Shown: positions 18,309-28,893, counted from the first letter of the stretch. The stretch is 64,000 nucleotides of DNA from Rebecca billardiae RCC1528 (GCA_965240325.2 OZ251239.1:1178001-1242000), one strand, 5' to 3'. A program made the numbers and translations. The notes: a model not told the origin generated them from the letters alone.

Positions 18309-21300
18309 CTAGCCGCCCATCGCCACGGCGTTCATGCTCTGCGACTCCGCGTGCGCGCGCGCACTGGCGCGCCGGGCGCCGACGGCCGGCATCAGCTGCT
18401 GTCGCGGCTGGGCCGCGCGGTCGGCCTCTGGCCCGTCAGCGGCTACTGCTTCGCCCCCCGGCTGGAACTCGGCCTCGAGCAGAGACTCGAGCGGCTGCGC
18501 GAGCGCCGCCTCGCACTGCGCCACGTGCGAGATCTGATCTCGGCGCCCGGCGCGGTCGGCCGCGGCGCGGGAGAAACAGGGGCGGGGCGGAGCAGCGCAG
18601 GTCAGCAGACAGACAGACAGTCCTCAGCGCGGCGCGCGCGCGGGGCACCCCGTGCCGCGTGCGCGCGCGGCGCCAGTGTTACTGAGACGGCCGATGCGCG
18701 CGCAGACCTGCCCTGCCCGCCCTCCCCGCACGCCACGGCGCTCGCGCGCGCGCAGCCGTGCGGTCCGCGCTCTCGCCGCGCGCCGCGCGCGCCGCCGCCG
18801 CACCTTCCTCGACAGCCCCGCCGTGAGCGTGGCGGCAAAGTCAGCGAGGGCCTCGCGCCACTGCTCGATGGCGGGCTGCACGGCGGAGGTGACGTGGCGG
18901 TAGCGCTCCGGCCGGCCGGCGGCGTACGCCTTGAGCCGGCCCCACAGCTCGGGCTGCTCATCGTTGAGCACCTGCCCGCGCGCGCGCTCCAGCCGTGTGG
19001 CCTCCTCCAGCAGCGCGCGCGCCGCCTTCGCCCCGGCCGCCTCGGCGGCGACCCACTCGCCGACGGCGCGCACGCTCGCGAGCGTCTCGCGCGTGCGCGC
19101 CAGCTGCGCCGCCTGCGCCTCCGCTCGCGCCTCCTCGAGGTGATCGACCGAGGCGGCAGCGTACGGCCTCCCCGAGCCGCGCGCCGCGCCCTTCGCCAGC
19201 AGCATGCTTCGCACGACCTCGATCTCATCGCCGCGCTCCCGCTCCGCGTCGTCCAGCGCCGTGTGTCCCAGCCGGTCCTCAGCATTCACCTCGAGCGAGC
19301 GCTCGCCGAGCAGAAAGTGGCACGCCGAGACTGCGGCGTTGGACACGGCGAGGTGGAGCGGCGTGCGCCGCCCCGCGTCGTAAGAGTTGACCGTGATCCC
19401 GTGCTCCACCAGCCGGCGCAGCGTGGCCACGTCGTCTCTGGCCGCCGCGAGGTTGAGCGCGAACGCGCCGTCGAACGAGCCCATGTGCCCGCCGCTGCCG
19501 AGCAGCAGCCGCGAGACCTCGGCGCGCTCGCAGCGGAACGCGTCGTGCAACGGCGTGTGCCCGCGCCGGTCGGCGGCGTTGACGTCGGCGCGGTGCGCGA
19601 GCAGCAGCCGCACGTTCTCCGCGTGGCCCGCCGCCGCGGCCATGTGTAGCGCCGTGCGCGCGTCCGCGCTGGGCGCGTTCACGTCCGCGCCGAAGCGCAG
19701 CAGGTTTTCGAGCGTGTGCGCCGCGCCGCCGTCGGCCGCCGCGTCGCACAGCTCGTCCGCGAGCTCGGCGGAGCCGATCTCACCGCCCGCCTCGAGCAGC
19801 ATGCGCGCCGTGTCGTCGTGCCCGTGGCGCTGCGCATCGTGCAGCGGCGTGCGCCCGTGCCGGTCGAGCGCGTTCACGTCGGCGCCCATCGCGAGGAGCG
19901 TGCGCGCGACGGCGAGCTGGCCGTGCGCGGCCGCGACGTGCAGCGGTCGCCTGTCGTCGTAGTCGCCCCGGTTCACGTCCACGTTCTGCGCGCGGAGCAT
20001 GCGGTGCACCTTGGCCACGTTGCCCGCCGCGCACGCGCCGCACAGCTGCACGGTGTGCAGCCCGTTGCGCCGCTTCTTGGCATTCGAGACAATCTGAGAG
20101 AGCGCGCGCGCGGACGAGAGAGGTGGCGGCGGCGGCGGCGGCGGGCGCGCGGAGGGGGCCGGGGCAGGGTGGGTGGCATTTGCGTGCGCGCGCGGGAGCT
20201 GGTGTGAGCAAGGGCGGGCACGATGGCGGCGGCTGCACGCGCCGCGGCGGCGGCGCGCGCGCACCCGCTGGATCGCGTTGAACTCCTGCTCGACGAGCGC
20301 CGTCACGCGCGTGCCGTCGGACACGGCCGAGACGGCCGCCTCCGACTGCTTCGACGCCGAGCGCGCCGACAGCCGCGAGCGCCCCGAGCGCGAGGTGAGC
20401 GCGCCAGAGTGCCCCGCCATCGCGTTGTCCATGATCACGTCCTCCTGGTTGGGGAACGCCTTGAGCAGGATGCGGTACTTCTCCGCCTGCGCGGCGCGGC
20501 GCGGCATAGCACGACAGGGCGCGGCGCGCGAGCGAGGGCGCACGCCGCACGCACGCCGCACGCGTCACAGAGCAAGGCGCGCGCGGAGGCCGTGTGCACA
20601 GCGCGGCTCAGGTGGCGCCGCCGCGCGGAGCGAGCGCGCGCGGCGGGCGCGCGCGGCGGGCGCGCGCGGCGGTGACGGCGGCGGCGGCGCGCGCGCCCGC
20701 ACCGAGAGCACGAAGAGGTGGGTCTCGATCTCGGAGGTGGTGCGCGCCGTCTCGATTTGCCGCATCGCGAACACGAACGGCAGCTCACCCACCGTCTCCC
20801 CGGGTAGCACGGTGTCGGCGCCGTCCGCGTCGGCGCCACCATCCACATCCTCAAACACGTCGACCGCGCCCGACTCGACGAGCAGCAGCTCCTTGCACGG
20901 CTCGCCCGTGCGGAACAGCACCTGCTCCGGCTCGACGGTGCGCTCGCGCATCAGCGCGGAGAGCCTGTCGATGAAGCCGTCCGAGCAGCCGCGCAGCAGC
21001 GCGGTCGACGCGACGAGCGCGCGGTTGGTCGAGCGCGACACCTCGACCTGCAGCACGATCGGCAGCGCGTCGTAGATCGTGTCGTCGCGCACGGCGGAGA
21101 GCGAGGCGTCTCTCAGCCGCGCGTGGAAGAAGGAGCCGATCTGCGCCTTGAGCGCCGCGGGCACGCGCACGTGCGCGAGGAAAGCGTGCACGAGCTCGAG
21201 CTGCGCGCGCTTCTGCACGATCTCGTCGTCCTGCTTCATCACGAGCGCAGAGATCTGACCGACCACCCACGCGTAGATGGTGAGGTTGAGCGCGAGCAGC

Positions 21301-24300
21301 ACCAGGGTGAGTAGCACCTCCGCCGCGTTGGCGGGCACCTGCGGCAGCCCGAGCGTCGTGAGCGACGACCAGACGAAGTACGCGCAGATCGCGTACTTGC
21401 GCACGAGGCGCTGGCCGGGCTCGGAGGAGAAGGGCGGCGCGCCGTCGGCGGGGTCGGTGCCCGGGTGCGCTGGCACAATCCCGCCCACCGCCGCCGCGTC
21501 GGCCGCGTACTGCTCCGGCCACGCGGGCGCGAGCGTCGCCGCGAGCGGGGAGTACCCGAAGACGGCGAACGCGCACGTGCACACGTGCGCCGCGAGCGCG
21601 AGGATCGTGAGGTAGTGCACCAGCCCGTTGAGTAGGTTGTCGTCCGCCTTGTTCCGCGTCCACGCGACGTACTGCCGCCGGATGTATCGGACGTTCAGCA
21701 GCCTCGTGAGCCGCAGCCCGAGCACGACGATTGGCGGCGCGCCGAGCGCGAGCGCGAACAGGTCCTGCGGCCACGCGGCGAGCAGGTCCCACGCGAAACC
21801 CTTCGCCATGTAGTGCTCGGTGATCTTCGCCGGCTCCCACACCGTCGCCGAGTTGGCGTTCACATAAGTCGTGCGGAAGCGGAGGCCAATGCGCAGCAGG
21901 TAGAAGGCGCTCAGCGCGTGGTTGTGCGGGCCGAGCCACCAGCCGAGCGCGGACGCCTCCTCGAAGAAGCAGAGCTGCACGGGCATGAGCAGCGCGTCCC
22001 ACGCGGTGAGGCAGAGGAAGAGCCGCTCGATGCGCACGCTCGCCGCGCCGTCGTGCCGCAGCACGAGGCACGACGCGCCGCGCCGCGCGCCGCCCGCCAG
22101 CTCGCCGCCGCCATCCTCGCCCGTTGGACCGCCGGCCTGGCGCTCCTCGGCGCGCAGCGCGGCCGCGCGAGAGCGCAGCGCTCGCACGTAGCCGGTCCAT
22201 GTGGTGGGCGGCGGCGGCTCGTCGTCCTTCGAGCCCTTCGAGCCGTGCGAGACGCGCTGCTGCGACGCGCCCGTCGTCGGCGGCTCGGGCCGCACGTGCG
22301 CGTGCAGCTGCTCCTCCGACCACGCCGCCCACGCGCCGTGCCACGCGCCCTCGGGCACGTCGGCGGGCGCGCGCGCGATCGGCGCGCCCGCCTCGTCCGA
22401 CTCGGCCACGTCGACGAGCGCGGCGGCGTGCACCTCGGCGCCACCCAGCAGCTCCCCGCCGTCGAGGCGGCGCTGCAGCGAGTCCACGAGCGCGCCGAGC
22501 GCCGCCGCCGAGCCCAGCGCCTTGCCGAGCGCGAGCAGCGCCGCCGCCGCTGCCTCCGCGCCGCCGCCGCCGCCGCCCGCGTCGTCGTTGCCCTTCTGCT
22601 GCTGGCCGAGCGACGAGGTCGACGACTCGGGCGCCACCTTGGCCGCGCTCGCGCGCGCGTGCGCCAGCATCGCCGACACGCTCGCCCGCCGCTTCGGGTC
22701 GGCGCCGCCGGCGCGGTTGAGCTTGCTCAGGTCAAGGACAAGCGACGCGTCGGCCTCGGCCGCGCCGCCGCCGCCGCCGCCGCCGCCCGCCGCAGAGCGC
22801 GCGCCGTCGGCGTCCGCAGCGGCGTCGTCGTCGTCCTCCTCGTCCGCAGCGGTGGAGAGCACCCACGACGCGGCGCCCGCCATGAACTGCGCCGCCGTGA
22901 GCTTCTTCAGCCGAGGCACGCGCACGTCGATGTCCACCTCCTCGTCCCTGCCGAGCGCGGACGCGAGCTGGCCGAGCGCAGAGGAGCGGCGGCGGTGGCG
23001 GCGCATGAAGCTGCCGCCGTCGTCGGCGTCGGCGCCGTCGCCGGCGCCGTCCGCTGCCGAGCGGCTGGGCTGCCGGCTGCGCCGCGCGCCGCCGAAGCCG
23101 TCGGCGACGTCCGCTGCCGAGCGACTGGTCTGCCTGCTGCGCCGCCCGCCGCCGAAGCCGCCGCCGTCCAGTCCGTCGCCGGCGACATCCGCAGAGCGAC
23201 TCGGCAGCCTGCGCCGCCCGAGGTCTGACGGGCTGACCTCCCTGCTGCCGTGCGCGCCGCCACGCACCACCGACGAGCGACGGCGCGCCTTGGCGCCGCC
23301 ACTACCGCCGCCGCCGCCGCCGCCGAGCACTCCGACGTCGCCCGCCGCCGAGCCGAGCCGCCGGCGCTCAAAGCGCGCGTCGGCGCGGCCCGCCCGCACG
23401 CGGCCCTCCGGAGTCGAGCTGCCCGCGCCCGCGAGCGACGCCAACTCGAGCAGGTGGCGCAGCAGCGACTTGATGTCGTCGCCGCCCATCTCGCCGAGCC
23501 GCCCCTGCAGCGAGGCGACGTCGCGGATGCGGATCACGCGCTCGCCGCGCCGGTCGAAGCAGACGAAGAGGTCGCGCAGGAAGGCCGCCGCCTCGACCAG
23601 CGCTGCGGGCGGCTGCGCGCCATCCGTCTGATCGCAGTCTGAGCTGCGCTCCGAGCGCGAGGCGCCGCGCATGGGCGCGTCGAGTGCGCTCGAATCGTCA
23701 TCGCACGTCGGCGGAGGCGAGGAGCCCCCCGCCGCCGCGTCGGCGCGCGAGCGCCTGTAGGCGCCCCAGAAGCCGCCGCAGCTCCGCCTCGGCTCGGCGA
23801 AGCTCCCAGAGGCGGCGTCCGACAGCTCGGCGCCGAGCAGCGAGCCCTCCGCCGCCGCCGGCGACGACTGGGCAATTACCGGCATGGTCTGGGCGGGACG
23901 TGCGCGGGGTGCGGCCGCGCACGCGCCGTGCACGGTGCGCGGTGCGGACTCGTCAGCGTCGGTCACGATGCGGCGGGACGAGCTCCCGCTCGAGTCGCCC
24001 GACGCGGTGCTGCTCGCCCGGGCACCAGCCGCCCGCTGCACGCCCGCCGCGCCCTCGCCTGCGCCGGCGCGGCCGCCCTCGCGCGCCGCCGCCGCGCTCC
24101 GGCGCCCGGCGGCGGGCGAGAGTCGAGCGAGCAGACCAGCCACCTTTGGCGAGGCCAGCGGCGCGGAGCCGCCGTCCGCGTCCGCCGCGTCGAGCGCCAG
24201 CCGCCCGCTCGCCGCCGCCTCGGCGCCGACGATGCGCGACGAGCGCACCGACCTGCTCGGGCTGCGCAGCCACATCGGGCTTGCCGGCGCGTCGGCCGCG

Positions 24301-26447
24301 CTCGCCGCCGCGGCGCGCGGGCGCGCGCGCTTGCTCGACTGACGGCCGGCGGCCGCGGCGCTCGACGTAGTGTCGGAGCGGCGCGTGAGCGCCGCCATGA
24401 AGGTCTCGGAGAGGAAGAGGCACACGTGGCCCACCTCCGAGAGGTAGAGCACCGTCCCCTCCTGCTCCGCGCCGGCCGTGGGGCCGGGCCCATCTGCGCC
24501 GCGCGCCGCGTCCGCCGGCTGCGCTCGGCCGAGCGGCGCCGGCGGCGCCGCCGAGTGCAGCTCGGCGGCGTTCGCGTGGCGCGTGGCGAAGAGCGGCGCT
24601 TCGGGCTCGGCGTCGTCGACGGCTTCCATGCTGATGGCTGGCACGCCGAGCGTCGCGCGCGCCGGCGAGCCGGCGCCGCCCTCCGCGGCCGCCACGCCGC
24701 CCGCCTCATGCCGCGCGGCCGCACCCTCGGCGGCTGGCCGAGCGCCCGCGCCCACGCCGACGCCGGCGACGCGCGTGCCTGGCCCGACGAGTAGGGTGAG
24801 CTGCGCCGCCACCTCCTCGAGCGTGGCGAGCGCGTCGACGCTCGAGAGCGCGCACACCTCGCGCAGCAGGCCGAGCGCCGCCTGCCGCTCGGTGTGCGCG
24901 CGCCCCGCCGCGCCCATCCGCGCGAGCCGCTCCGCCGGCAACCGGCGGCCAAACTCGGAGCGCAGCAACTCGAGCCCCGCCTCGGCGCGCGGCAGCCGCA
25001 GCACGAGGCGCGTGAACTGCTGCGCGCCCTCCGTCGAGAGCGGCGGCGCGCCGCCGGCGCCGCCGCCTCGCTTGCCGCCGCCCGCCGCCTCGCCGCCGCC
25101 GCCGCCGCCCTCCTCGTCCGACGAGCCCGAGCCGGAGCTGTGCGAGCAGGAGTCGCCGCCGCCCCTCCCGTCTTCGGAGTCGTCGTCGTCCACGTCCGAG
25201 TCCGGGTCGTCCTCATCTGAGTCCTGCTCGCGCTCGGTGGCGTAGTTGGCGATCCAGTCGTCGACGCAGCGGGGCAGCCGCTTGACGAGCACGGTCTGCG
25301 CGTGCTGGAGCGCGCTGAGCTGCGCGTCGAGCGCGGAGAGCGCGTGCCCCAGCTGCTGCTGGTTCGTCAGCGCCGCCTGCTCCCACTTGGCGCGCCGCCG
25401 CTTCCGCCGCCACAGGTTTCGGTTCACAGCAAACATGTCCTGCGCGAGCGCGCCGGCGAGCAGCGCGCCGAGCTCGGCGTCGTCGGCGAAGGCCTCGGGC
25501 AGCCGCGCCGCGCACGTCTGCGCGATCAGCGCCGCCACCTCGTTGTTCCGGCTCAGCGCCTCCACGAGCGGCGACGCGCCCCAGCGGTCGACCGCGGACA
25601 CATCGGCCATCGCGTCGAGCAGATACGCGACGGCCGTGATTGAGCCGGAGGCGGCGGCGACGTGGAGTGGCGTGCGGCCGTCGTAGCCGCGCGCGTCGAC
25701 GGAGGCGCCCGACTCGACGAGGAACTGCAGCTTCGCCGCGTCGCCCGACGCGGCCGCCGTGAACAGCTGCTCGGTCAGCGCCACGCGGTTGGGCACCGCG
25801 CCGGCGCGCACGAGCAGCTGCGTCACGAGCGTGTGCTCCGCGCGCATAGCCGCGTCGACCGGGCTGTGGCCCCAGCTGTCGCGCGCGTTGGCGTCGGCGA
25901 GGCGCGAGATGAGGTACTCGACGATGCGCAGGTTGCCCGTCGCCGCCGCGAGGTGCAGCGCCGTGCGCCCGTCGTGGTTCGCCGCGTTGAGGCTCACGCC
26001 GTGCTCGAGCAGCGCGCCGACGTGCTCGACGTTGCCGCTCGCGGCTGCGGCGCAGAGCGCGGCCGCGGGGCGCGCGAGCTCGGCGACGGCGCCAAAGGCG
26101 CGCAGCTCGTGCGCGACGGCGTGGTGCTCGCTGCGCAGCGCCTCCGCCATCGGCGTCGCGCCCCACCGGTCGCGCGCCTCCACGTCCGCGCCGAGCTGGC
26201 ACAGCAGCACCGCCACCTTGTCGTTGCCCTCGGCCGCGGCTAGGTGGAGGGTCGTGCGGCCATCGTAGTTGCCGACGTTCAGGTCGGTGCCACGGCGCAC
26301 GAGCGCGCGCACCGTCTCGACGTCGCCCTCGGAGGCGGCGGCGACCATCTGCGCGAGCGACTCCTCGTTGCGCGCGACGATCGCCGCGCGGATCAGCTCG
26401 CGCAGCGCCTCGTGCTCCTCGCGCTCCGCGTCGTCGAGCACGCCGCC

Positions 26448-26478
<31 letters not shown>

Positions 26479-28259
26479 CCGTCGGCCGCGTCCGCGCCGC
26501 TCGGCTCGAGTCCAAACCGGTGGAGGATGTTGCGCAGGATGAGCTCGGCCTGCTCGGGGTACGAGGCGATGAGCTCGTCGTACTCGGCGCCCGCGAGCAC
26601 GAGCAGCGTCACGTCGCCCGACGCCGTCGCCACCACCGTGTACGGCTGGTGGATGCCGAGGAAAAACGAGAGCTCGCCGACGACTGGCCCGGCGGTGCCG
26701 AGGTCGGAGCGGAGCGTCGCGACGTGCGCGTCGCCCGAGCGCACGGCGAGCGAGCCGCCGACGCACCAGAGGAGCTCGCGCGCGCCGTCGCCCTGGCTGA
26801 AGATGGTCTCGAGCGGCATCGCGTACCGCTCCTTGAGCACGATCACGATCTGGTCGAGCAGCTGCGCCGAGCATCGCGCCAGCACCCACGTCGCGTGCAC
26901 GTGCCGGTAGTGCTGCGCGGCGGCGACGCGCAGCTTGAGCGAGAGCGGCAGCTGCTCGAAGATCTTCTCGGTGCCGGAGGCGGCCTTGCGGTGCTGGAAC
27001 TCGAAGTGCGCGCGCATCTTGCGCACCACGCCCGGCGGGAGCGAGCGCTTCGCGCCGTACTCGTCCACCGCCTTGAGCAGCTCTTTGAAGTGCAGAGTGT
27101 TCTCGTCCACCCTAACCAGGTAGTGGAAGAGCGTGCCGAGCACGAACGCGTAGAAGACGATCTGCACGACGCAGATGAGGACGGCGAAGAGGAGGTCGGC
27201 GAGGCGCACGAAGGTGAGCGTGCCGTACCCCATCGCCGTGACGCCCGCCGACGCCATGAAGAGCGAGAGCAGATACCGCTTCGACTCGGACGCGGCGGCG
27301 GGCGCGAAATCGGGGTTGCCCGCGAGCAGCTCGAGCTGCGCCGGCCACGCGGGGAGCGTGTCGGCGCCGCCCTCGCTCACCTCGGCGAGGAGCCACCAGG
27401 CGCACGCGATCCAGTGCGGCACGGCGAGGAGCACGAGCGAGAACTTGAACGTCGCGAGGAACCGCACGTTCGTCCCCAGGTCCGAGTTGATGCGGCGCAT
27501 GTACACGAAGAGATCGTGCGCGCGCACGCACCGGAAGAGCTGCGCGACGAGCCACAGCGCGAGCGCGCCGCCGAGGAGGAAGTGCGCGCGGCCCGCGTGG
27601 AGCAGGCCGATCGTGAGCACGTCCAGCGCGAGCCGAACCCGCGTGAGCGACGCCTCGCCCGCGCCGTCCCGCTCGTCCGCGGCGGGCGCGGCGAGCGCCC
27701 TGCCGCCGCCCGAGCCACCGGCGGCCGCGCCGGCGCGGCCGCCCGCGCGGCGCGCGGCCGCGGAGCTCGAGGCGGAGGCGGCGGCGCGATCCGCGAGCGC
27801 CGCGCGCCGCTGATCGTACACCCGCGCGCACAGCGCCACCATCTCGAACACGTCCACGCCGACGTCGAGCGCGATGAAGAGCGGCGAGCCGAGCGGGAGC
27901 ACAGGGAACGCCACGCGCACCGGGATCACAAAGAACTCGTACGTGAGCTGCGGCAGGCGGAGCGAGCGGTAGACGGCGAGCCAGCGGCCGCGGAGCTCGC
28001 GCTCGCGCTCCAGCTGCGCGGTGCGCCGGGCGTCCTCCTCGCCGCCGTCGTCGCCGTCGTCACCGACCAGCTTCTCGCGCCACTTGACGCTCAGGTGAGC
28101 GCGCCGCGGCGCGGCGCCGGCGCGCCGCAGGATGCCATGAGGGCCCTCGTCGCGCGGCGGCGCCGCCGCGCGCAGCGTCGATGCCCGCCTCGCCGCAGCA
28201 GCCGCGCCCGCTGCCGCGTCGCGACGGAGCGCACCGGGCAAATGAAGGAGGGAGGGCAT
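18309..28259 (-). CDS. Tandem two-module cation/K+ channel: [6TM-pore-CNBD-ankyrin repeats] x2, AKT/Shaker-plant-like modules
   Basis: Module 1: S4-like LFRCVRAHDL, pore TAMGYG (27222-27239), CNBD IFSQGD...VGELSFF, ankyrins NYDGRTTLHLAA, NHDGRTALHLAA, GYDGRTPLHVAA. Module 2: S4 LRLTRLLNVRY, pore TTLGLPQ (21339-21359), CNBD LFRTGEP...VGELPF, ankyrins DYDDRRPLHVAA and others. Frame-preserving GT-AG introns predicted at 20487-20702, 20094-20264 and 18708-18803; the last intron (~18540-18673) is uncertain. Confidence 0.9.
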
Positions 28260-28893
28260 GATCGTCCCGCGGTGCAGTGCTTGACGGCTGCGAGGAGCCG
28301 CCAGTCGCGCGCCCACGGGCACAGGCGAATCTGCTATCGAGGATTATTGATTTTGACGAGTCGTTTCATACTGCTTGTACTCGACGATGATAAGGCCATC
28401 TGATTGGTGCCTGAGCCGAGTGTCCCGCGAAGACATACCAAGCGGCATTATGAATCACCGAACCTGAAACCCTTTTCTCTAAAAGTATTCTTTCGTCACT
28501 ATGATCATACTCGGTTGCAGAATTTAGAAAGTATCCGGTTGTCCGACTCTCTGAAATGGTGAAATGAGTGAAAGCTCGTCAAAAGTATATGGGGGTATGC
28601 AAAATCAGGCGGGTACATCCAGTGATCCAGAACGTCGTCGCAACGTGCACGCATATTTGTTTTGACGCGTGTCCCAGGGACGCGCGTCCCAGGACGACCA
28701 GGACCCTTTCGCTGAATATGAATGATGATTCACCAGCGAATCCCGGTTCGAGTGCACCCCTCTGTCGTCAGCCGGCGTGCTCCCTCGGGCAATGGATGCC
28801 GCGGATGCCGCGGACGACAGCCGCCAGACACCGTGCCGCCGCCCGGCCCGGTCACGGTTGAGTCGCGCCAGCCAGACGCCCGGGCATGATCGA

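Follow-up and report, generated by a model that had tools for sequence, protein, structure and literature searches.

In the textbook channels of the cyclic nucleotide-binding domain (CNBD) family, such as HCN, CNG, KCNH, and the plant Shakers, four subunits with one repeat each make up the tetramer, and selectivity is set by filter strands that are identical in all four. We describe here a gene from the haptophyte Rebecca billardiae RCC1528 that encodes two complete, different channel units in one chain. It lies on the minus strand, at positions 18309-28259 of a 64,000-nucleotide stretch of genomic DNA (GCA_965240325.2 OZ251239.1:1178001-1242000), hereafter called the window. The closest described systems are tandem CNBD channels with two repeats, which were reported from sequence in dinoflagellates and oomycetes in 2020 and have TVGYG-like filters in both repeats (PMC7576140). 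That study makes no mention of ankyrin repeats, found tandem channels to be absent from the other SAR (stramenopile, alveolate, and rhizarian) groups examined, and reported none from haptophytes.

Like the channels of PMC7576140, the R. billardiae protein has two six-transmembrane (6TM)-CNBD repeats per polypeptide with less than 30% identity between them, its first and second repeats fall into separate clades with mirrored branching, and it is known from sequence only. It differs from them in its host, as that study found them in SAR lineages only and its own relatives are found in Rhodelphis and green algae. It also differs in having an ankyrin block in each repeat, a linker of about 1000 amino acids (aa), and a conserved non-GYG filter in repeat 2, where the family consensus is G-x-x-Q-x-P-x-N and not a TVGYG-like sequence. 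No dinoflagellate or oomycete sequences were identified among the hits of our searches, and multi-repeat hits from Montipora and Platysulcus were not tied to the channels of PMC7576140. A literature search beyond that paper found nothing on an ankyrin-bearing two-repeat family. By its architecture and tree pattern, in which the likeness lies, the protein appears to be a variant of the tandem channels described in 2020. An earlier reading of the window by a model, the first-pass annotation, had known of no characterization of this architecture, and in this respect it has to be corrected.

The gene is real, and it is a single tandem gene. It very probably encodes a two-repeat subunit that belongs, among the 6TM cation channels, to the CNBD superfamily, since both repeats contain S1-S6, a P-loop, a C-linker, and a CNBD fold by Pfam, phmmer, and AlphaFold2 (AF2) models compared with Foldseek. 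The minus-strand frame 28322..20565 runs for 2585 codons without a stop, with an ATG at 28259. The first-pass annotation had seen in it a transmembrane (TM) domain, pore, CNBD, and ankyrin repeats, followed by a long linker and a second TM domain, pore, and CNBD, and both the frame and the Pfam domains confirmed this order. The features of the gene, all on the minus strand, are as follows.

18309-28259, minus strand: whole gene, three exons of 2519 + 561 + 74 codons, about 3154 aa.
20703-28259, minus strand: exon 1, 2519 stop-free codons that cover repeat 1, the linker, and repeat 2 as far as the beta-roll in its cyclic nucleotide-binding (CNB)-homology domain.
27105-27947, minus strand: repeat 1 TM domain S1-S6, from the AF2 model and Foldseek, with a low-complexity insert between S2 and S3.
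27222-27239, minus strand: pore 1 selectivity filter TAMGYG, by translation.
26460-27104, minus strand: repeat 1 C-linker and CNB-homology domain; its phosphate-binding cassette (PBC), GELSFFLGIHQPYTV, resembles SKOR GEISILCNIPQPYTV and is without the Arg.
25410-26417, minus strand: ankyrin block 1 (Pfam Ank_2, 2.6e-43).
22140-25379, minus strand: linker between the repeats, about 1080 aa of largely low-complexity sequence, translated in frame and under weak constraint.
24930-25019, minus strand: linker island 1, F.RLVLRLPRAEAGL..L, kept in eight paralogues, Diacronema lutheri P0003, and MMETSP P0011.
23400-23579, minus strand: linker island 2, a putative degenerate EF-hand-like element, LFVCFDRRGERVIRIRDVASLQGRLGEMG..IKSL.
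21225-22052, minus strand: repeat 2 TM domain S1-S6 (Pfam Ion_trans, 4.3e-8), with an Arg-rich S4 (LRLTRLLNVRYIRR).
21339-21359, minus strand: pore 2 filter TTLGLPQ, by translation.
20703-21224, minus strand: repeat 2 C-linker and CNB-homology domain, the part in exon 1; PBC GELPFVFAMRQIETAR, with Gln at the key Arg position.
20487-20702, minus strand: intron 1, GT..AG, 216 nt, not in the transcript contig L001.
18804-20486, minus strand: exon 2, which completes CNB-homology domain 2 and adds ankyrin block 2 and a conserved C-terminal region.
19242-20096, minus strand: ankyrin block 2 (Pfam Ank_2, 4e-41; five Ank hits).
18534-18803, minus strand: intron 2, AAG/gtgcgg ... atcag/ATC.
18309-18533, minus strand: exon 3, 74 codons and a TAG stop ending at 18309.

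The window has a GC content of 70-80%. Along the full length of exon 1, GC at the third codon position (GC3) was 0.89-0.97 compared with 0.40-0.75 at the second (GC2). The exon 1 frame is followed by an open reading frame (ORF) at 18624-20561 on the minus strand that holds five ankyrin repeats by Pfam. Intron 1 joins the two, with the donor CTCTCG/gtgcgg after 20703 and the acceptor ...cgcgcag/GCGGAG before 20486, and its GC is flat over the codon positions (0.89/0.85/0.82). The spliced reading across it, HLFVLS/AEKYRILLKAFPNQED, is colinear with the uninterrupted stretch HVFVLSLESYKVLLKTFPQQED of L001 (JGI Ga0186485_100016), a transcript contig of a related alga, with 63% GC, that holds repeat 1, the linker, repeat 2, and ankyrin block 2 and then, after a stop, an AT-rich tail (untranslated region), and whose protein clusters with MMETSP transcripts at 90% identity or more. 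Exon 2 is colinear with residues 2002-2519 of the L001 ORF at 38% identity. The clean introns that the first-pass annotation had invoked to add a second ankyrin block are thus borne out by splice motifs, L001 colinearity, and the five ankyrin repeats. Intron 2 is less certain than intron 1, because its basis is the splice motifs, the frame, and a C-terminus that weakly resembles that of L001. Protein searches were run with exon-wise references. GC values of 0.45-0.60 occur only in the flanks (17.6-18.2 kb and 28.2-28.8 kb), and inside the gene GC never falls below 0.64. This flank drop, from about 0.75-0.85 to 0.45-0.60, looks like a usable marker of intergenic DNA in the R. billardiae genome.

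At 79% GC, the open frame between the repeats might be a by-product of base composition, and the locus might consist of two adjacent paralogous genes with separate transcripts. Long spurious ORFs are frequent in the window, and the single transcript is known from relatives and not from R. billardiae RNA. Nevertheless, two genes are highly improbable here. The 3240-nt linker has 0 in-frame stops compared with 6, 7, 4, 6, and 14 in the other five frames, and 500 composition-matched shuffles of it gave a mean of 11.6 stops and a minimum of 3, with zero stops in none. The linker keeps the codon periodicity of the domains (GC3 0.89-0.95 vs GC2 0.60-0.75) without a GC dip, while intron 1 and the upstream DNA are flat. 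Eight paralogues, D. lutheri P0003, and MMETSP P0011 share four conserved islands in it (residues ~1081-1110, 1561-1620, 1785-1800, and 1921-1950). Its frame is open also at 63% GC in L001 and in the D. lutheri genome, where a 2674-codon open frame crosses both repeats. Of the 20 paralogues that were fetched, 8 have a single unbroken frame that takes in both S6 motifs, at a distance of 1700-2025 codons from each other. Moreover, the MMETSP sequences P0026 (2647 aa, Met start) and P0167 (3020 aa) each span both repeats. The first-pass annotation had named separate transcripts for the two modules as evidence against a single polypeptide, and what the relatives have is transcripts that cover both. 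The stop-free linker, the GC3 periodicity, the conserved islands, and the spanning transcripts of relatives leave the two-gene reading largely refuted.

L001 contains a single break, a frame-shifting insert of 14 nt at nt 1235-1248 (ATACATCTATTTAG, with ...TTTAG at its end), which separates the S6 of repeat 1 from the C-linker. In P0011, the protein of a sister contig, AAKRRLPAAV reads in frame across the insert point, the insert is missing, and both repeats are in frame. The insert looks like the result of splicing at an alternative 3' site, which would make this isoform non-productive.

The single chain might also be a precursor that is cut in the disordered linker, yielding equimolar repeat-1 and repeat-2 subunits for ordinary heteromers or homomers. 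The linker is long, low-complexity, and weakly constrained, with a dN/dS of 0.66-0.75 against the closest paralogue (this and the other dN/dS figures are rough, because extreme codon bias depresses dS and the linker alignment is uncertain), and the fusion would guarantee a 1:1 stoichiometry. However, no protease site or processing domain was found in Pfam scans of the gene pieces, the linker, and the islands, and the conserved islands suggest a function of the linker itself. We consider such processing very unlikely. No Pfam family matched the linker (residues ~1000-2050, about 1050 residues).

Island 2 aligns with a Pfam-recognizable EF-hand in the linker of a Bryopsis homologue (pairwise E 0.002). 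In the window, other residues stand in place of the calcium ligands, and Pfam, run on the linker and its islands, detected no EF-hand there and gave sub-threshold EF-hand scores in P0003 and P0011. Island 2 could perhaps be a degenerate EF-hand, a weak reading for which the Bryopsis homologue is the basis. The linker of that homologue (Bryopsis sp. GMH40854.1, P0080) has near-threshold Pfam EF-hands at residues 987-1010 and 1139-1191 (EF-hand_7, 5.7e-6), and the first of them is the one that aligns to the island at 23400-23579. Therefore, the ancestral linker may have been calcium-sensing.

Repeat 1 is very likely plant-Shaker/SKOR-like. By Pfam it has an Ion_trans_2 pore (residues 325-382), a cNMP_binding domain (482-567), and ankyrin repeats (~615-950). 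Its best match in the Protein Data Bank (PDB) by phmmer was SKOR/plant Shaker (E 2e-22). The AF2 model (maa0b9c021536, pLDDT 77) has six TM helices and a pore helix, and Foldseek aligned about 500 columns of it to GORK/SKOR/AKT1 (E 5e-17). Like SKOR, GORK, and AKT1 (PDB 8jec, 9l9u, and 7t4x), repeat 1 has GYG, a PQPYTV-type PBC without Arg, and C-terminal ankyrin repeats, and these plant Shakers match the fold of both repeats. Unlike the plant Shakers, whose subunits have one repeat, tetramerize, and end in a KHA domain, the present chain is a tandem, and its repeat 1 has a charge-poor S4 (LFRCVRAHDLFVYMRR), with 4 R/K in the aligned segment compared with 7 in repeat 2. No KHA domain was hit by Pfam in any piece of the gene at E <= 1. 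With its tandem form, no KHA hit, and a repeat 2 that is nearer to KCNH, the protein does not belong to the plant Shaker family. The S2-S3 loop of repeat 1 (window 27600-27800, residues ~170-235) carries an Ala/Gly/Arg low-complexity insert of about 60 aa in the voltage-sensor-like domain. This insert is disordered in the AF2 model (pLDDT <50, model residues 84-110) and gapped in most homologues.

Repeat 2 can be assigned with high confidence as KCNH/HCN-like, with an Arg-rich S4, a non-K+ filter T-T-L-G-x-x-Q-x-P-A-N (where x-x is LP), a CNB-homology domain, and an ankyrin block. Pfam places Ion_trans at residues 2078-2337 and cNMP_binding at 2440-2514. Five of the seven R/K of its aligned S4 segment are in the core LRLTRLLNVRYIRR. 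The best solved relative by phmmer against the PDB was hERG/KCNH2 (E 9e-23), and the AF2 model (m4926c9347cb2, pLDDT 83) matched GORK/HCN1 in Foldseek (E ~1e-19 to 7e-21). The first-pass annotation had compared the chain with AKT/KAT-type channels, a likeness that applies to module 1 (AKT/SKOR-like) but not to module 2. Like KCNH/hERG and HCN (PDB 5va1 and 5u6o), repeat 2 combines an S4 rich in Arg with a short S4-S5 linker, and its C-linker is joined to a CNB-homology domain. Unlike hERG, which has SVGFG, it reads TLGLP, is without a PAS/eag domain, carries ankyrin repeats, and follows another channel unit to which it is fused. In the alignment with hERG, TTLGLPQ is opposite TSVGFGN (SSLTTLGLPQVPAN against SSLTSVGFGNVSPN), and therefore Pro takes the place of the second filter Gly. 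The S6/C-linker of repeat 2, YAWvVGqISaLVMKQDDEIV.KRaQLELV, is the best-conserved stretch of the whole protein.

For both repeats the Foldseek matches span ~460-515 columns and cover the full 6TM-C-linker-CNBD fold. In the AF2 secondary structure of the two repeats, the S4 and S5 helices (H140-165/H171-200 and H126-153/H159-186) have a gap of about 5 residues between them, and thus both models have the short S4-S5 connection of the non-domain-swapped type. The two CNBDs called by the first-pass annotation are both present by Pfam, but the phosphate-binding Arg is missing from each: the canonical G-E-x(8)-R-[ST]-A is replaced by GELSFFLGIHQPYTV in repeat 1 and GELPFVFAMRQIETAR in repeat 2. The position of this Arg was assigned provisionally, by an ungapped comparison with HCN2 and PKA. 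In the alignment with SKOR, the PBC of repeat 1 reads IHQPYTV, which is of the plant-Shaker type. Repeat 2 has Q at the Arg position (H in paralogues) and an Arg one residue before it. Because both CNBDs are without the phosphate-binding Arg, gating by cyclic nucleotides appears doubtful.

The mismatched pores reported by the first-pass annotation, TAMGYG and TTLGLPQ, are exact translations of 27222-27239 and 21339-21359. Among the paralogous loci of the genome, 20 gave a reading of repeat 1 and 19 a reading of repeat 2 (20 if the window is counted), and 14 of 33 pairs lie outside the set with both repeats. The repeat 1 filter was T-A-[ML]-G-Y-G in 16 of the 19 readable genome copies, the window included, and GYA, GYT, or GYV in the other three; in Rhodelphis and green algae it was GY[DQI] or GNL. 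In repeat 2 (20 paralogues, window included), the residues flanking the filter were highly conserved (first Gly 20/20, Q 17/20, P 20/20, N 17/20). The two "YG" positions, on the other hand, held 13 different dipeptides (LP, LG, LT, SG, MP, IS, LS, LV, AG, AA, TA, VF, and VV), and the second filter Gly was kept in 3 and missing in 17. Even the closest paralogue, C1, which is 79-87% identical, reads GLG. The K+ signature T-[VIT]-G-[YF]-G is thus confined to repeat 1 and is not on every pore strand. A search of algae for the same architecture and for GLP had been proposed in the first-pass annotation; the architecture does occur in several algal lineages, but GLP is not fixed.

Such variability could mean that module 2 arose as a duplicate, is now in decay, and has a pore free of constraint, since the canonical G[YF]G has been lost and the two positions vary among paralogues. 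This is scarcely credible. Against paralogue C1, the dN/dS of the TM domain and pore was 0.35 in repeat 2, the same as in repeat 1 (0.34), and that of the C-linker/CNBD and ankyrin regions was 0.29-0.45. The 20 paralogues, and the other lineages as well, show high conservation of the flanking G, Q, P, and N and of the S6/C-linker, and no stops or frameshifts were seen. The conserved filter flanks and the equal dN/dS refute a decaying pore 2, the second finding that the first-pass annotation had expected to speak against its reading. As judged from this pattern of conservation, pore 2 is specialized.

A six-frame search of the 72-Mb R. billardiae genome with repeat 2 gave 95 matches. At least 34 tandem loci, this one included, had a strong repeat-2 match and a weaker repeat-1 match on the same strand. 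The match starts were ~4.3-7.9 kb apart (about 5-6 kb at most loci), and most of the loci were in open frames of 2000-3400 codons. Word-based protein searches returned 8 hits each, all Pavlovales-like; the wider spread came from an exhaustive protein search, which gave 3756 hits at E <= 0.001. The order of repeat 1 (R1) before repeat 2 (R2) was also found in Rhodelphis marinus, Cymbomonas tetramitiformis, Bryopsis sp., D. lutheri (KFE25_007711, P0003), and MMETSP transcripts, and the Rhodelphis, Cymbomonas, and Bryopsis members have ankyrin repeats after both repeats. In a tree built from S5-to-CNBD cores, all 17 first repeats formed one clade (SH-aLRT 98), and the second repeats were on the opposite side with mirrored branching. 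The four-repeat CNBD proteins among the distant hits (P0032 and P0049) fell outside the R1/R2 family, in a clade of their own. Since the R1 and R2 clades are separate and mirrored and have members in Rhodelphis, Cymbomonas, and Bryopsis, the fusion is old. On the evidence of these homologues, the tandem family is common to other Pavlovophyceae, Rhodelphis, and green algae.

Several relatives have unusual forms. Two repeat-2-type matches in R. billardiae (loci L014 and L015, C8:1488299-1489678 and C8:1555324-1556655) lie in open frames of 12,933 and 13,615 codons, which far exceed those of any other paralogue, and have the filter TSLGLTQLPAT. These frames could belong to giant genes that are low in complexity or rich in repeats, or they could be an artefact of the GC content. 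The CNBD-channel matches at C32:598837-600003 and C25:852522-853043 have no nearby repeat-2 partner and may be single-repeat members of the superfamily. D. lutheri has two variant architectures that adjoin on one contig (KFE25_012279, P0004, and KFE25_012280, P0006). P0004 consists of two modules of the repeat-2 type, with the filter shortened to TTVG-GMPPSN. In P0006, a repeat 2 comes after a repeat 1 with the filter GYS, in which no CNBD or ankyrin repeats were detected.

To our knowledge, every characterized tandem P-loop channel (K2P, TOK, TPC, Nav/Cav, and CNGK) forms a single pore from its repeats. From the precedent of TPC, K2P, TOK, Nav/Cav, and CNGK, together with the strict and ancient R1-R2 order, we lean slightly toward a shared pore, in which two chains would assemble one pseudo-tetrameric channel with repeats 1 and 2 alternating. 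The inner T-x-x-G ring would be kept by all four strands, and the outer Y-G carbonyls would come from the two repeat-1 strands only. The resulting two-fold filter would be expected to be cation-permeable with reduced K+ selectivity. Its main gate would be the voltage sensor of repeat 2, not cyclic nucleotide, and the ankyrin blocks might be docking or regulatory platforms. CNGK, a K+-selective CNG channel of sperm (PMC4749565), and TPC, K2P, and TOK likewise have internal P-loop repeats in one chain that build a single pseudo-symmetric pore. CNGK differs from the present channel in having four repeats with GYG in each and no ankyrin, and TPC, K2P, and TOK differ in being without CNBDs. Pores that mix CNBD-family subunits of two kinds, of which one is modulatory or non-canonical, are known from AKT1-AtKC1 and CNGA/CNGB (PDB 7wm1 and 7rh9). 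In those channels the subunits are separate gene products with variable or 3:1 stoichiometry, whereas here 1:1 would be fixed by the fusion.

A number of points weigh against this account. The linker is very long and flexible, and the repeats are not forced into the same pore. Selectivity is unreadable from sequence; HCN has GYG and yet selects weakly (PMC7576140). Complex prediction with two repeat-1 and two repeat-2 S5-S6 segments, run with no alignments, gave a score of 0.04 and a partner pLDDT below 50, and we give it no weight in either direction. The roughness of the dN/dS figures counts on the same side, as does the fact that the single mRNA is seen in transcripts of relatives and is inferred from these for R. 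billardiae.

In the main rival reading, two homotetrameric pores are held together by a tether, for which the linker would be long and flexible enough. Four chains would then build a K+-type GYG pore from their repeat-1 units and a separate, CNG-like non-selective pore from their repeat-2 units, and the linker would only co-localize the two. Each repeat is a complete 6TM-C-linker-CNB-homology domain-ankyrin unit, and the ~1080-aa linker is mostly disordered and weakly constrained and therefore imposes no geometry. In the tree, single-repeat proteins were found inside the repeat-2 clade, although many of them look like fragments. However, we know of no characterized tandem P-loop channel that works in this way. 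The hypervariability of the repeat 2 "YG" positions, with 13 variants in 20 paralogues, would be tolerated more easily if repeat 1 supplied the outer filter, and the R1-R2 order has been strict since before the haptophyte, Rhodelphis, and green-algal copies split. Twin pores thus seem unlikely.

If the pore is heteromeric, repeat 2 might still be a built-in silent subunit, without an ion-coordinating filter of its own, that shifts gating and trafficking as AtKC1 or CNGB does. The loss of the second filter Gly in 17 of 20 paralogues would fit this, and the AKT1-AtKC1 and CNGA1/B1 heteromers were among the closest structural matches. On the other hand, repeat 2 has kept T-T-L-G in its inner filter as well as the Q.P.N motif, and the pore-region dN/dS of repeat 2 equals that of repeat 1, so we think a silent role quite unlikely. 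A silent and a selectivity-changing subunit are hard to tell apart, because the pore of a four-strand filter is lined by every one of its strands. The shared pore might be extended to a hard-wired 2:2 heteromer with a two-fold filter, in which the repeat 2 dipeptide would be a natural tuning knob for the ion selectivities or conductances of at least 34 paralogues. We offer this tentatively, as a doubtful but possible refinement. If true, it would be a mode of filter diversification undescribed for CNBD-family channels.

The point of interest is the mismatch between the two filters, an asymmetry that is family-wide. In a tandem gene, heteromeric stoichiometry is fixed genetically, and two strands are systematically different. 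If the repeats share one pore, the family would be a natural experiment in which the K+ filter has been partly removed from two of four strands. Current annotations such as "hypothetical protein" or "cyclic nucleotide-binding domain-containing protein" conceal this distinct channel class. The family is large in R. billardiae (at least 34 loci) and occurs in haptophytes, Rhodelphis, and green algae alike, and it therefore probably makes a major contribution, as yet unstudied, to the membrane excitability of marine phytoplankton.

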